A stretch of DNA of 64,000 nucleotides from Octopus sinensis (lineage: Eukaryota), in assembly GCF_006345805.1 (NCBI RefSeq), contig NC_042998.1:79856001-79920000 (forward strand), in the 5' to 3' direction. The notes beneath the pieces are model-generated. The model was not told where the DNA came from. It did not search any database and saw nothing but the letters and a program-made list of their open reading frames with translations. Shown one piece after another: positions 53,501 to 55,717 of this stretch (the first letter of the stretch is position 1; each line of letters starts with the position of its first letter). The position numbers and the translations under genes are program-made.

Positions 53501-55717
53501 TGCCATTCACCCTCTTCCCTAAGATCTCCCTAAAACACAACTCTCCATCTTTAAAGAAAGGATAATGATCATCATCATTGTCTTTTTAATGTCCACTATC
53601 CCATGTTCGCATCATCAGTCAGATTGAATGTTTTGGAGGCAGGTTTTGGATCTTTAACTTTTGACCTACAGATTTAAAAAATGATTTTTTGTAACTAAGC
53701 TCTTTCAAACTTCGGACACTGGTAGAATGTGTCGTATAAAACATCTTTTACTCTTAGCATTTTTGAGAAAAACTTATGTTTACAAAAACTTATGTTTACA
53801 AATTTTTGTCTCATTAAGAAGTTTGTTTTCCAACTACAATGTTTCAGGTTCAACCCTACTGCATGATGCTTTGGAGCAAGCATCTTTTATAGCCTCAAGT
53901 CAACTAATGCCTTATTAGTGGATTTGGTCGAGAGAAACTAAAAGATGTCCATCGCATATATGTGTGTATATGTATCTGTGTGCGTGCGTGCATGCATATC
54001 TTAACTTCTAGTCTTGACATCATGTGATGGTTGTTAACAAGCATCACTGCCAAACAAGCAGTGTACTTCATTTCCAATCTTCCATGTAAATATGTCTGGC
54101 CATGGGAAAATATTACTTTACTTGGAAACAGGTGAAGGTTAGCAACAGACCTACAGATTTAAAAAATAATTTTTTGTAACTAAACAGTTTCAAACTTCGG
54201 ACACTGGTAGAATGTGTCATGTAAAACATCTTTTACTCTTAGCATTTTTGAGAAAAACTTATATTTATGAAGTTATTTCACATTAAAGTTGTCCTATTTC
54301 AGTAATTTCAACCAATCAATGACATGTATTCAACTGAATAAAATTACTGCTGTTGTTTGTGTCCCTGTTATTTATGACAACCCTAATCCTAAAACCCTAA
54401 CCCTAACACCAGTACAAACGCATGAACGCTGTCATAAATAACAGTGACAAACAAAAATACACTGCCGACAGTTGTTATTGACAAACAACGGCAGTGATTT
54501 TATTCAGCTGAATAAAATCACTGCCGTTGTTTGTCAATAACAACTGTCGGCAGTGTATTTTTGTTTGTCACTGTTATTTATGACAGCGTTCGTGCGTTTG
54601 TACTGGTGTTAGGGTTAGGGTTTTAGGATTAGGGTTGTCATAAATAACAGGGACACAAACAACAGCAGTAATTTTATTCAGTTGAATACATGTCATTGAT
54701 TGGTTGAAATTACTGAAATAGGACAACTTTAATGTGAAATAACTTCATAAATATAAGTTTTTCTCAAAAATGCTAAGAGTAAAAGATGTTTTACATGACA
54801 CATTCTACCAGTGTCCGAAGTTTGAAACTGTTTAGTTACAAAAAATTATTTTTTAAATCTGTAGGTCTGTTGCTAACCTTCACCTGTTTCCAAGTAAAGT
54901 AATATTTTCCCATGGCCAGACATATTTACATGGAAGATTGGAAATGAAGTACACTGCTTGTTTGGCAGTGATGCTTGTTAACAACCATCACATGATGTCA
55001 AGACTAGAAGTTAAGATATGCATGCACGCACGCACACAGATACATATACACACATATATGCGATGGACATCTTTTAGTTTCTCTCGACCAAATCCACTAA
55101 TAAGGCATTAGTTGACTTGAGGCTATAAAAGATGCTTGCTCCAAAGCATCATGCAGTAGGGTTGAACCTGAAACATTGTAGTTGGAAAACAAACTTCTTA
55201 ATGAGACAAAAATTATTACAAATATTAAAAATACATAATCCATGCAGGATTATGTATTTTTAATATTTGTAATAATAAAAACTGTATTTTTACTTTTATT
55301 TTTTTAATCAGGAGAGATGGCATGACCTTTTATATGGCCTCCAAGACTAATGGGAATGAGGGTGGGAGCTAGGGAAAGAAGAAGATATCTTCAGCCTATT
55401 ATCATCATCATCATCATCATCATCAAAAACATCACTGATATGTGAACTGAGAGTAACAACTATTTTTAGTTAGACATAACATTAAAACAAAAAATAAAAT
55501 AAAAACTTGTCATAAGATTTAATTTAGTGACATTTGGATTAAATATTAAAAACATTAATCTTTCAACATTAATTTCTTTAATAATTTCCTGTATATTTTT
55601 TTCCAGCCTGAATTTCTGGTCAATACATCTGGCATTGCTGAATGGAATGGATACCAAATGAGAAGTAAACTTGGATTAGTGAAGAGTTCCTCATTAAGAA
55701 ATGTTCCTATTAAATAA
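32490..55717 (+). CDS. YARS1: Cytoplasmic tyrosyl-tRNA synthetase with C-terminal EMAP II-like domain; spliced CDS join(32490..32552,34494..34640,35881..36056,38873..39002,39471..39551,41392..41443,46295..46480,49673..49758,50241..50370,51144..51220,52343..52536,53305..53440,55607..55717), 522 aa
   Basis: The 13 exons join in frame (1569 nt, ending in TAA) with GT-AG boundaries. Class I motifs [14 protein letters not shown] (HIGH-like) and KMSSS are present, plus the EMAP II motifs SRLDFRVG and HPDADSLY. The sequence is colinear with human YARS1 as recalled. Confidence 0.97.
32625..32855 (-). mobile_element. SINE family A copy in YARS1 intron 1
   Basis: Minus-strand ggtgagctggcagaaacgttagcac...gagttcaaattccgccgagg. 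Confidence 0.85.
33560..33978 (+). mobile_element. RTE 3' UTR fragment
   Basis: gtgccggtggcac units, then aggaagggcatccagcc and a (GAT)n tail. Confidence 0.85.
34494..34640 (+). CDS. YARS1: YARS1 exon 2 (EILGEDQ...[14 protein letters not shown]...KAGCE)
   Basis: 147 nt, cag/gtaggt boundaries, HIGH-like motif. Confidence 0.97.
34960..35790 (+). mobile_element. Degenerate CR1-clade LINE RT fragment in YARS1 intron 2
   Basis: Peptide LLNEDKF...[35 protein letters not shown]. Confidence 0.8.
35881..36056 (+). CDS. YARS1: YARS1 exon 3 ([29 protein letters not shown]...DYQLSK)
   Basis: 176 nt, cag/gtacgt boundaries, phase-2 end. Confidence 0.97.
36970..37290 (-). mobile_element. SINE family B copy with internal deletion
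   Basis: Similarity to 31706-32122. Confidence 0.75.
38873..39002 (+). CDS. YARS1: YARS1 exon 4 (EYTLDVYKL...SGLLYPGLQ)
   Basis: 130 nt, cag/gtaaat boundaries; missing from the ORF track, translated by hand. Confidence 0.97.
39471..39551 (+). CDS. YARS1: YARS1 exon 5 ([27 protein letters not shown])
   Basis: 81 nt, aag/gtttgt boundaries. Confidence 0.97.
40216..40772 (+). mobile_element. Young CR1-clade LINE 3' fragment (copy 3), YARS1 intron 5
   Basis: [17 protein letters not shown]...[15 protein letters not shown]; tail gtggtgcacttgagcactgtatacaata(att)n. Confidence 0.9.
41392..41443 (+). CDS. YARS1: YARS1 exon 6 ([17 protein letters not shown]+A)
   Basis: 52 nt, cag/gtaagt boundaries, phase-1 end completing the Ile codon with exon 7. 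Confidence 0.95.
42265..44250 (-). mobile_element. L1/Tx1-type ORF1 (gag-like, CCHC knuckle) element with no ORF2, frameshifted
   Basis: ORF pieces 43775-43299, 43276-42749 and 42810-42577 in three frames; [14 protein letters not shown] = CX2CX4HX4C; no RT or endonuclease downstream. Outer boundaries approximate. Confidence 0.7.
44685..45112. mobile_element. Inverted composite of a tRNA-head SINE with a Penelope-like tail, inserted in a SINE B copy
   Basis: Arms 44717-44869 and 44963-45116 are inverted; minus-strand A-box TGGCGTTGTGG and B-box GTTCAATTCC lie in the spacer; 12-bp direct repeat tacacagccata at 44673 and 45113. Confidence 0.75.
46295..46480 (+). CDS. YARS1: YARS1 exon 7 ([18 protein letters not shown]...[12 protein letters not shown]...PAVKD)
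   Basis: 186 nt, cag/gtaagt boundaries, KMSSS motif. Confidence 0.96.
46950..47560 (+). mobile_element. Degenerate RTE RT C-terminal remnant
   Basis: Broken peptides [15 protein letters not shown] and WYGHVM match RTE motifs. Confidence 0.7.
47011..47290 (+). repeat. 140-bp tandem duplication (2 copies, 1 mismatch seen)
   Basis: 47011-47150 equals 47151-47290 except gatgagattt vs gatgggattt. Confidence 0.95.
49673..49758 (+). CDS. YARS1: YARS1 exon 8 ([29 protein letters not shown])
   Basis: 86 nt, cag/gtttgt boundaries, phases match both neighbours. Confidence 0.93.
50000..50121. repeat. 53-bp-arm hairpin made of inverted RTE 3' UTR sequence
   Basis: 50000-50052 pairs with 50069-50121; 16-nt loop. 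Confidence 0.95.
50241..50370 (+). CDS. YARS1: YARS1 exon 9 (ELHPGDFK...LLDPIRKEF...KAAYSPAQ)
   Basis: 130 nt, tag/gtaagt boundaries, HPGD and LLDPIR motifs. Confidence 0.95.
51144..51220 (+). CDS. YARS1: YARS1 exon 10 ([25 protein letters not shown])
   Basis: 77 nt, tag/gtagac boundaries, start of the EMAP II-like domain. Confidence 0.93.
51850..52080 (-). mobile_element. SINE family A copy in YARS1 intron 10
   Basis: Near-consensus; similar to 32625-32855. Confidence 0.85.
52343..52536 (+). CDS. YARS1: YARS1 exon 11 ([16 protein letters not shown]...[21 protein letters not shown])
   Basis: 194 nt, tag/gtaagt boundaries, OB-fold tRNA-binding domain core. Confidence 0.97.
53305..53440 (+). 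CDS. YARS1: YARS1 exon 12 ([12 protein letters not shown]...[13 protein letters not shown])
   Basis: 136 nt, cag/gtaagt boundaries. Confidence 0.96.
53801..55214. repeat. 1414-bp spacer-less palindrome in YARS1 intron 12
   Basis: Centre 54507|54508 (ttttattcag|ctgaataaaa); arms are reverse complements except T54423/G54592. Confidence 0.97.
55212..55276. repeat. 30-bp-arm perfect hairpin (loop atgca) abutting the large palindrome
   Basis: attattacaaatattaaaaatacataatcc / ggattatgtatttttaatatttgtaataat. Confidence 0.95.
55607..55717 (+). CDS. YARS1: YARS1 terminal exon 13 ([36 protein letters not shown])
   Basis: 111 nt after a ttttttccag acceptor, TAA at 55715-55717; resembles the TyrRS/EMAP II C-terminus. 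Confidence 0.92.
   Translation, partial: PEFLVNTSGIAEWNGYQMRSKLGLVKSSSLRNVPIK

Follow-up and report, generated by a model that had tools for sequence, protein, structure and literature searches.

A 1.4-kb spacer-less palindrome in the last TyrRS intron of Octopus sinensis, a probable recent inverted duplication by template switching

The last intron of the TyrRS gene of Octopus sinensis carries a 1414-bp palindrome in which two 707-nt arms meet without a spacer. Comparison with Octopus vulgaris and Octopus bimaculoides shows the left arm to be the derived, inverted copy and the right arm the original, the copy being confined to O. sinensis among the three species. The breakpoints, as read from the aligned assemblies, appear to bear the signature of a polymerase that switched template and returned, one that would not result from a simple chimeric read, whether of the missed-adapter or of the fold-back type. 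We therefore regard the palindrome as probably a very recent, O. sinensis-specific inverted duplication, with no function of its own, that arose from a switch-and-return replication error.

Geometry, gene context and repeat content

The analysed window is a 64-kb stretch of DNA that is 100% identical to the O. sinensis assembly GCA_006345805.1, in agreement with the cephalopod origin supposed in a preliminary description of the sequence. The 522-aa O. sinensis TyrRS maps to the window as 13 exons on the plus strand (32490-55714), and this protein mapping places the palindrome in intron 12, the last one, as had been proposed (Table 1). With the splice sites of exons 12 and 13 read by eye from the sequence, 360 nt separate the palindrome from the donor of this intron and 392 nt from its acceptor, the latter matching the earlier estimate of about 390 nt before exon 13; no exon is duplicated. 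By exon mapping, the orthologous intron measures ~1554 nt in O. vulgaris and ~923 nt in O. bimaculoides. Whether the palindrome is real or an artefact, the coding sequence and gene model of TyrRS are unchanged.

The two arms are reverse-complementary at 706 of 707 positions and pairing is lost directly outside them, at 53800/55215. Both the arm coordinates given in the preliminary description and its single mismatch are recovered, T54423/G54592 being the sole non-complementary pair across the 707 and a U-G wobble as RNA. The guanine, which lies on the ancestral arm, agrees with O. vulgaris, and the thymine marks the change on the derived arm; alternatively, the mismatch could be a heterozygous SNP given to one arm in polishing. 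The window contains no N, so the palindrome is internal to a contig, and both flanks run on correctly for tens of kb within that one contig. Its G+C content is 34.9% (65% A+T). A chance origin is rejected, since this is the only 707-nt perfect inverted repeat in the 64-kb window.

The arms consist of decayed repeats. Each carries a SINE-like interspersed repeat, of which the window holds further copies at 64-81% identity, together with most of a foldback MITE. The claim that the arms copy a decayed SINE and part of a MITE holds for the decay and for the MITE; Rfam and tRNA scans detect neither a tRNA head nor an Rfam family in the SINE-like repeat, which leaves the class 'SINE' unverified. Both arms share lesions specific to this locus, namely an 8-bp insertion and a deletion of 51 bp by which the MITE and the SINE-like repeat have become joined. 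The deletion, which is specific to O. sinensis, shortens the right TIR. The inner MITE is complete as a foldback element: it has the TIR GGATCTTTACCTTTTGACCTACAGATT... and, in O. vulgaris, the 8-bp TSD CAGGTTTT, and O. bimaculoides has an empty MITE site with one copy of CAGGTTTT. Foldback MITEs are common across the window.

Table 1. Features of the palindrome and its surroundings in intron 12 of TyrRS (positions are those of the window).
Feature	Position	Strand	Basis or remark
Cytoplasmic TyrRS (YARS1-type) exon 12	53305..53440	+	tblastn, TyrRS residues 433-486; donor GT at 53441; boundaries approximate
Intron 12, last, 2166 nt	53441..55606	+	exon mapping
Left MITE TSD copy, CAGGTTTT	53640..53647	.	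CAGGTTTT on both sides of the element in O. vulgaris
Kept outer part, left long TIR of foldback MITE	53648..53785	+	orthologous to O. vulgaris up to 53786
Left (novel) junction	53770..53801	+	alignment to O. vulgaris
Left junction sequence, ...TTATGTTTACAAATTTTTGTCTCATTAAG...	53785-53830
Left arm, derived inverted copy	53801..54507	-	matches O. vulgaris and O. bimaculoides in reverse orientation only
Left arm, SINE-like repeat	~53806-54147
Left arm, MITE part	54148-54507
Single arm difference	54423	+	left arm T, C expected; CpG-to-TpG on derived arm
Centre sequence, ...GGCAGTGATTTTATTCAGCTGAATAAAATCACTGCC...	54488-54527
14-bp mini-palindrome TATTCAG/CTGAATA (TATTCAGCTGAATA)	54501..54514	.	shares its centre with the 1.4-kb palindrome
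Right arm, ancestral copy	54508..55214	+	collinear with right flank in all three Octopus species
Right arm, MITE interior and right long TIR	to 54867
Right arm, SINE-like repeat	54868 to ~55209
Perfect hairpin, 30-bp stem, 5-nt loop	55212..55276	.	common to O. vulgaris, absent in O. bimaculoides
Exon 13, last coding, stop codon included	55607..55717	+	acceptor by eye; boundaries approximate
Alternative ancestral junction			MITE arm ...CAATCAATGAC(A/G)TG running into TATTCAGCTGAATAAAATC

Comparison with O. vulgaris and O. bimaculoides

In both relatives the locus holds one copy of the arm sequence, in the orientation of the right arm and contiguous with both flanks, and the left arm of O. sinensis is the sole inverted block across 33 kb at ~98% identity. 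It is because both relatives carry the right arm alone, collinear with its flanks, that the left arm is taken as derived and as peculiar to O. sinensis. A look at the orthologous intron in related octopus assemblies had been suggested as a check on the palindrome, and it finds the single right-arm copy, with the left arm absent, in both species. A collapsed palindrome in O. vulgaris is rejected, since the 55 bp lost in O. sinensis are still there and O. bimaculoides agrees.

The comparison also helps to date the duplication. Between the arms, a single site in 707 differs, whereas O. sinensis and O. vulgaris differ by 12 substitutions and 3 indels (1.7%), and the two species split 2.5 My ago (PMC10700109). 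On this arm divergence, the inverted duplication would be at most ~0.2 My old. The earlier view that it postdates the decay of the repeats and is very recent is borne out directly by comparison with the two related species. The near-perfect identity of the arms fits an artefact as well as it fits extreme youth.

Breakpoint anatomy and origin of the palindrome

The centre of the palindrome coincides exactly with that of TATTCAGCTGAATA, one of the internal mini-palindromes of the MITE. O. vulgaris has this mini-palindrome too, where its MITE arm ends on the inner side. Comparable sites are two in number in the local 1.1 kb of O. vulgaris and make up 0.21% of positions locus-wide. No adapter or extra bases are found at the palindrome centre. 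The outer edge of the right arm, between 55214 and 55215, falls 2-3 nt inside the base of the 30-bp-stem hairpin, which is the only perfect stem of at least 15 bp in the O. vulgaris locus outside a repeat-like cluster; this 65-bp hairpin recurs in a PacBio and an ONT assembly that are independent of each other, and so is a local precedent for a real inverted repeat. At the left junction, a 16-bp tandem duplication of aaacttatgtttacaa (53770-53785 and 53786-53801), not present in O. vulgaris, meets the arm start with a 2-nt AA overlap (microhomology, read by eye), and 55 bp of the MITE arm (26059-26113 of the O. vulgaris locus) are deleted. Recombination between the MITE's own arms is rejected as the source, since the left junction is not arm-to-arm.

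These features can be accommodated by a switch-and-return replication error. Starting from an O. vulgaris-like ancestral intron, made up of left flank, foldback MITE, SINE-like repeat, 30-bp hairpin and right flank, a polymerase would have stalled at the structure-rich MITE and left its template inside the left arm of this element after one 16-nt slip, the extra slip being invoked because of the additional 16-bp tandem duplication at the left junction. It would then have copied the opposite strand for 707 nt, starting at the base of the 30-bp hairpin and ending at the 14-bp mini-palindrome, where it would have returned to the original template. The net outcome would be 16 + 707 bp in place of 55 bp, yielding a spacer-less palindrome whose right arm is original. 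We consider it rather likely that the palindrome is a real allele in the animal, and we infer that the event took place in vivo, in the germline.

The proposed event resembles the template-switch mutations described by the four-point, switch-and-return model (Loytynoja & Goldman 2017, PMC5453318) in that a reverse-complement copy of nearby downstream sequence appears to replace a short (55-bp) fragment, a perfect inverted repeat is made whose ancestral state is seen in a sister species, and the switch points fall where the local sequence is prone to form hairpins. It departs from that model in scale, with 707 nt copied, far beyond the short mutation clusters for which the model was built, and with switch points that span ~1.4 kb of product and ~0.8 kb of ancestral sequence; it departs also in the extra 16-nt slip at the first switch and in a return point that abuts the copied fragment and so leaves no spacer. 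Template switching is also reported as a process that creates and maintains RNA hairpins (PMC8794818). In yeast, inversion junctions occur at pre-existing inverted repeats of 2-14 bp (PMC10766183), a range into which the 7 + 7 bp at the octopus centre falls. Fold-back inversions and ODIRA (PMC10766183, PMC4689423, PMC3907307) likewise have their junction at a pre-existing short inverted repeat, and the step proposed for them is a template switch, either between leading and lagging strand or by fold-back. In contrast, they end in large terminal duplications or in interstitial triplications that include an origin, and interrupted repeats usually leave a short spacer in them, whereas the octopus locus has two copies only, each of 0.7 kb, interstitial and spacer-less, with both flanks intact and no triplication.

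The same palindrome could have been made outside the animal. The animal would then carry an O. vulgaris-like single copy, and a chimeric molecule or faulty read layout would have become the contig backbone and survived polishing; the chimera itself would be the in vitro product of a repair polymerase, or of a strand-displacing one, that had folded back at these hairpin motifs. We hold this chain of events, chimera source included, to be a serious possibility though an improbable one. The palindrome is carried by one assembly only, near-identity of the arms would be natural in a newly made copy, and fold-back reads are a documented long-read artefact that may recur at one site (PMC12870357). 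Such reads, and the palindromes of whole-genome amplification (WGA; bioRxiv 10.1101/173872), resemble the octopus sequence in forming a perfect palindrome with nothing between the arms in a single long-read data set. The proportion of duplicated BUSCOs in this assembly is elevated, at 5.2%, against 0.4-1.9% in the three other chromosome-scale octopus assemblies compared. Polishers leave insertions of ~700 bp in place, and polymerases switch template at hairpins in vitro too, so that the breakpoint signature alone is no proof of an in vivo origin.

The anatomy of the locus nevertheless sits poorly with a read that simply folds back or misses its adapter. The arms of such a read extend to the read ends and there is one novel junction, whereas here the copy ends at 707 nt and a second, complex junction, with its deletion and 16-bp duplication, rejoins the true left flank; artefact reads are symmetric, and the breakpoints here lie on hairpin motifs. 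The centre carries neither adapter nor other extra sequence and sits on the pre-existing 14-bp palindrome, not on a random fragment end, and the left junction has no homology able to mislead an overlap step. Long-read assemblers, moreover, usually require several concordant reads per path. Fold-back reads are virtually absent from the PacBio data of PMC12870357, these data being HiFi, MAS-Seq and Iso-Seq and not CLR. The preliminary description had judged a fold-back chimera equally plausible; this judgement does not hold for a simple fold-back read, given the second junction and the hairpin breakpoints; a polymerase chimera formed in vitro could fit, at the lower probability given above. Were the palindrome such an artefact, it would mean that two-junction, structure-driven chimeras can persist inside CLR-era reference contigs and resemble biology.

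Searches of public indexes do not discriminate between the two origins. ORFs that span the left junction or read through from exon 12 have no exact match in Logan and protein indexes, and the ancestral right-junction control is equally absent, which makes the result uninformative. A homology search with the junction ORF gave no candidate and one with the exon-12 ORF gave only a 70%-identical fragment. A Logan genomic contig from SRR11869391, found through another TyrRS exon fragment, was rejected as O. sinensis support; its identity to each of the three Octopus loci is no more than 82%, which assigns it to another octopod.

An older palindrome, kept perfect by arm-to-arm gene conversion in the manner of sex-chromosome palindromes and possibly useful through its hairpin RNA, is very improbable. 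Gene conversion is known to homogenise palindrome arms, the maintenance of RNA hairpins by template switching in the report noted above would be in keeping with such a history, and the palindrome centre gives sub-threshold matches to miRNA-precursor models. However, the left arm is missing and the lost 55 bp are retained in O. vulgaris, from which O. sinensis split 2.5 My ago, so that the age is capped regardless of conversion. The Rfam matches lie far under the gathering scores (best 46 bits against a threshold of 93, with none reaching it for a miRNA precursor or structured RNA gene) and are equal on both strands, as for any perfect hairpin, and the content of the palindrome is decayed transposon sequence. 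That the whole 1.4-kb unit inserted here as a mobile foldback element can be dismissed as next to impossible: foldback MITEs are indeed frequent around it and it contains one, but no 2-12-bp TSD flanks the unit, no second copy occurs in the window or in the octopus loci compared, two other species have the right arm at the orthologous position, and deletions specific to this locus are found in both arms.

Predicted RNA duplex and fragility of the locus

RNA structure prediction folds the palindrome into one unbroken 705-bp stem with a 4-nt loop (-1275 kcal/mol), in line with the ~700-bp pre-mRNA duplex anticipated in the preliminary description. ADAR editing is exceptionally active in coleoid cephalopods. 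The predicted intronic duplex may be a substrate of ADAR or Dicer without abolishing splicing; hyper-editing, endo-siRNAs and effects on splicing, raised in the preliminary description, would be its putative consequences. Inverted Alu pairs, an established ADAR substrate, offer a parallel as intramolecular, intronic pre-mRNA duplexes built from inverted transposon copies; theirs, however, have imperfect ~300-bp arms and a spacer, as opposed to the perfect 705-bp stem and 4-nt loop predicted here. A fuller scenario, in which a single 707-nt template switch nucleated by the MITE produced a real germline allele less than ~0.2 My ago, now seen before stabilising central deletions and with its 705-bp dsRNA hyper-edited or diced, is conceivable but on the doubtful side.

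Long perfect spacer-less palindromes are known to be unstable in vivo, a point that speaks against a real allele. Human PATRR11, PATRR17 and PATRR22 (~190-600 bp; PMC1851657, PMC4940405) are, like the octopus palindrome, near-perfect, AT-rich, essentially spacer-less and several hundred bp in size, and the cruciform extrusion and the difficulty of cloning and assembly expected of them are expected here as well. The octopus palindrome differs from these germline palindromes in being longer (1414 bp), in being built of transposon debris and in being known from one assembly. If real, it would be an unusually large and clean template-switch inverted duplication whose product is still perfect, with the ancestral state kept in a sister species of 2.5 My and each switch point assignable to a hairpin motif, and it would demonstrate that kilobase palindromes can be seeded by foldback MITEs. 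An ADAR-rich animal would then also carry, within an essential gene, a naturally occurring PATRR-like site and an intronic dsRNA that is perfect over 705 bp, and so provide a natural test of how cells tolerate such a fragile site and such a long dsRNA in a housekeeping gene.

A second zero-spacer palindrome, decayed and common to the three species, lies at 31003-31322 of the window and constitutes a local precedent.

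The palindrome and its host intron

A TyrRS sequence, used as a lead only, placed exons on the + strand. The protein then identified by database search, annotated as the cytoplasmic tyrosine--tRNA ligase of Octopus sinensis (522 aa; Pfam tRNA-synt_1b and tRNA_bind), maps onto the window in 13 exons. Its genomic locus in assembly GCA_006345805.1 matches the window at 100% identity, which assigns the window to O. sinensis chromosome CM016860.1. With splice sites judged by eye, intron 12 measures 2166 nt, 65% of it taken up by the palindrome, with 360 nt left on the donor side and 392 nt on the acceptor side. 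The mapping bears out the preliminary description, in which no exon was duplicated and the palindrome ended ~390 nt before exon 13. An inverted-repeat scan and a base-by-base check likewise recover the described geometry of two 707-nt arms separated by 0 nt, with T54423/G54592 as the sole non-complementary pair, and complementarity collapses directly beyond the arm ends. Since the window holds zero N, the palindrome is internal to the contig. No other inverted repeat of the 64-kb window comes near it in length or perfection; the rest are 71–95% complementary, as expected for MITE-like foldbacks. Two more MITE-like pairs illustrate how common such elements are hereabouts, one with 142–172-nt arms that are 82–94% complementary, the other with 147-nt arms (95%) and a 93-nt spacer.

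Features in and around the TyrRS palindrome (window coordinates)
Feature	Position	Strand	Remarks
Repeat array	12600-15800		dense ~110-150-nt repeats, mutually inverted and direct, 71-85% identity; satellite-like, or a foldback-element nest
MITE-like inverted repeats	8877-9552; 44723-45109
Older palindrome	31003-31322		decayed, zero spacer, 160-nt arms, 81% complementary; ~1.2 kb upstream of TyrRS exon 1
O. sinensis block	~43020-43199		~180 bp, missing from O. vulgaris alignment chain
TyrRS exon 12	~53305-53440	+	splice sites judged by eye
Left arm	53801-54507
Right arm	54508-55214
Telomere-like repeats	54378-54406; mirror 54609-54637		CCCTAA-type (aaccctaatcctaaaaccctaaccctaac), within MITE interior
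Perfect hairpin	55212-55276		65 bp, 30-bp stem, 5-nt loop; common to O. sinensis and O. vulgaris
TyrRS exon 13	~55607-55717	+	splice sites judged by eye

Ancestral state and age of the duplication

Orthologous loci were compared from O. vulgaris, whose assembly is ONT-based and which split from O. sinensis ~2.5 My ago (PMC10700109), from O. bimaculoides (split ~34 My ago) and from Argonauta hians. With ~98% identity over 33 kb, the O. sinensis locus runs collinear with that of O. vulgaris, and the left arm is the sole inverted block. O. vulgaris carries a single copy in right-arm orientation, contiguous with both flanks, and O. bimaculoides carries the SINE-like part only, likewise in right-arm orientation. 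The orthologous intron had been proposed as a check, and the left arm is absent from both loci; the right arm is therefore ancestral, and the left arm, which only the O. sinensis assembly shows, is its derived inverted copy. In Argonauta hians, a Pelota-family gene lies immediately downstream of TyrRS (18852-22380 of that locus). A 1584-bp genomic contig (Logan SRR11869391), in which a TyrRS exon reads through into the intron, shares only ~82% identity with the three Octopus loci and thus comes from a different octopod.

The O. vulgaris intron contains a complete foldback MITE whose terminal inverted repeats start GGATCTTTACCTTTTGACCTACAGATT and which has an 8-bp target-site duplication, CAGGTTTT, on both sides; O. 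bimaculoides shows the exact empty site. The long arms of the MITE are ~92–94% alike, and the internal end of each is a 14-bp perfect mini-palindrome, TATTCAGCTGAATA. Adjoining the MITE is an interspersed repeat of ~340 bp, of which the window contains several diverged copies; tRNA and Rfam scans of it found no tRNA-like head and no Rfam family. Of the decayed SINE and partial MITE to which the arms had been attributed, the MITE stands and the SINE is a plausible assignment. At 54867/54868 (mirror 54147/54148), an O. sinensis-specific 51-bp deletion fused the MITE right end to the ~340-bp repeat; the MITE lost its right terminus together with its target-site duplication, and the repeat lost 28 bp. 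Both this deletion and an 8-bp insertion in O. sinensis occur in both arms, so the duplication is later than both lesions, in line with the earlier proposal that inversion postdated repeat decay.

Across 699 aligned sites, 12 substitutions and 3 indels separate the right arm from O. vulgaris. Between the arms, 1/707 sites differ, which with the 2.5-My split makes the duplication at most ~0.2 My old; it could be new. The sole difference is a C-to-T change at a CpG in the derived arm, the O. vulgaris base being kept in the ancestral arm. It fits deamination following a real duplication, and equally a heterozygous SNP put on one arm during polishing.

Junctions and probable template switching

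The palindrome centre, 54507/54508, coincides exactly with that of the left mini-palindrome, a motif already present in O. vulgaris. Across the O. vulgaris locus, perfect palindromes of at least 14 bp are centred at just 0.21% of positions, and the surrounding 1.1 kb has just two. The outer end of the copied segment, 55214, lies 2–3 nt inside the base of the 65-bp hairpin, the only perfect stem of at least 15 bp in the O. vulgaris locus outside repeat-like clusters. In O. bimaculoides, this hairpin region lacks a 50-nt block with three parts, namely a 25-nt mini-palindrome, the adjacent 20 nt copied in reverse complement, and AAAAA; the difference resembles either a small template switch or the deletion of a palindrome. 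At the left junction, O. sinensis tracks O. vulgaris to 53786 and then has the 16-mer aaacttatgtttacaa a second time, while 55 bp of MITE arm (26059-26113 of L002, the O. vulgaris locus) are absent; a 2-nt AA overlap, judged by eye, marks entry into the left arm. The net change is the replacement of 55 bp by a 16-bp slip and 707 bp of reverse complement.

This junction pattern reads as a switch-and-return template switch, and in our judgement the structure very probably originated from a polymerase, a reading with good support. Along the ancestral sequence the switch points are ordered 1-4-3-2, and the zero spacer arises because points 3 and 4 overlap within the mini-palindrome. By one of two routes with an identical product, the nascent strand would fold over at the mini-palindrome and serve as its own template until the 30-bp hairpin blocked it. 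Junctions of yeast ODIRA are likewise reported at pre-existing 2–14-bp inverted repeats (PMC10766183), a feature shared by the octopus palindrome.

Allele, artefact and RNA consequences

The palindrome is probably a real allele. An artefact is possible, and a fold-back chimera had been considered equally plausible in the preliminary description. Fold-back or missed-adapter reads have one junction and arms reaching the read ends (PMC12870357), whereas here the copy halts after 707 nt at the hairpin base, the true left flank is regained via a second, complex junction, and the centre has zero extra bases, all of which argue against a simple read of this kind; nor does the left junction have homology able to mislead the overlap step. 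Several points keep the allele from being certain: the structure is present in one assembly only, duplicated BUSCOs in the O. sinensis assembly exceed those of its peers, polymerases switch templates at hairpins in vitro as well, and a 1.4-kb palindrome this perfect should not last long in vivo. Explanations other than these two are improbable.

The older palindrome upstream of exon 1 is single-copy and orthologous in 3/3 Octopus species (O. vulgaris 99.4%, O. bimaculoides 89.7% identity), and the 65-bp hairpin is common to two independent assemblies. Small to medium inverted duplications thus arise and persist in the lineage, and both cases count in favour of biology over artefact. Either template switching guided by local structure produced a derived, very young inverted duplication with the right arm as the original, or the palindrome is a polymerase-made chimera following the same logic. 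The former kind of mutation is already known, and the palindrome adds a further example if it is not such a chimera.

An Rfam scan of the palindrome gave only generic hairpin matches, all below threshold and on both strands, and so no evidence of an RNA gene. RNA folding predicts an uninterrupted 705-bp stem in the pre-mRNA segment (−1275 kcal/mol). Long uninterrupted RNA duplexes are substrates of ADAR and Dicer, and the predicted duplex may therefore be one.
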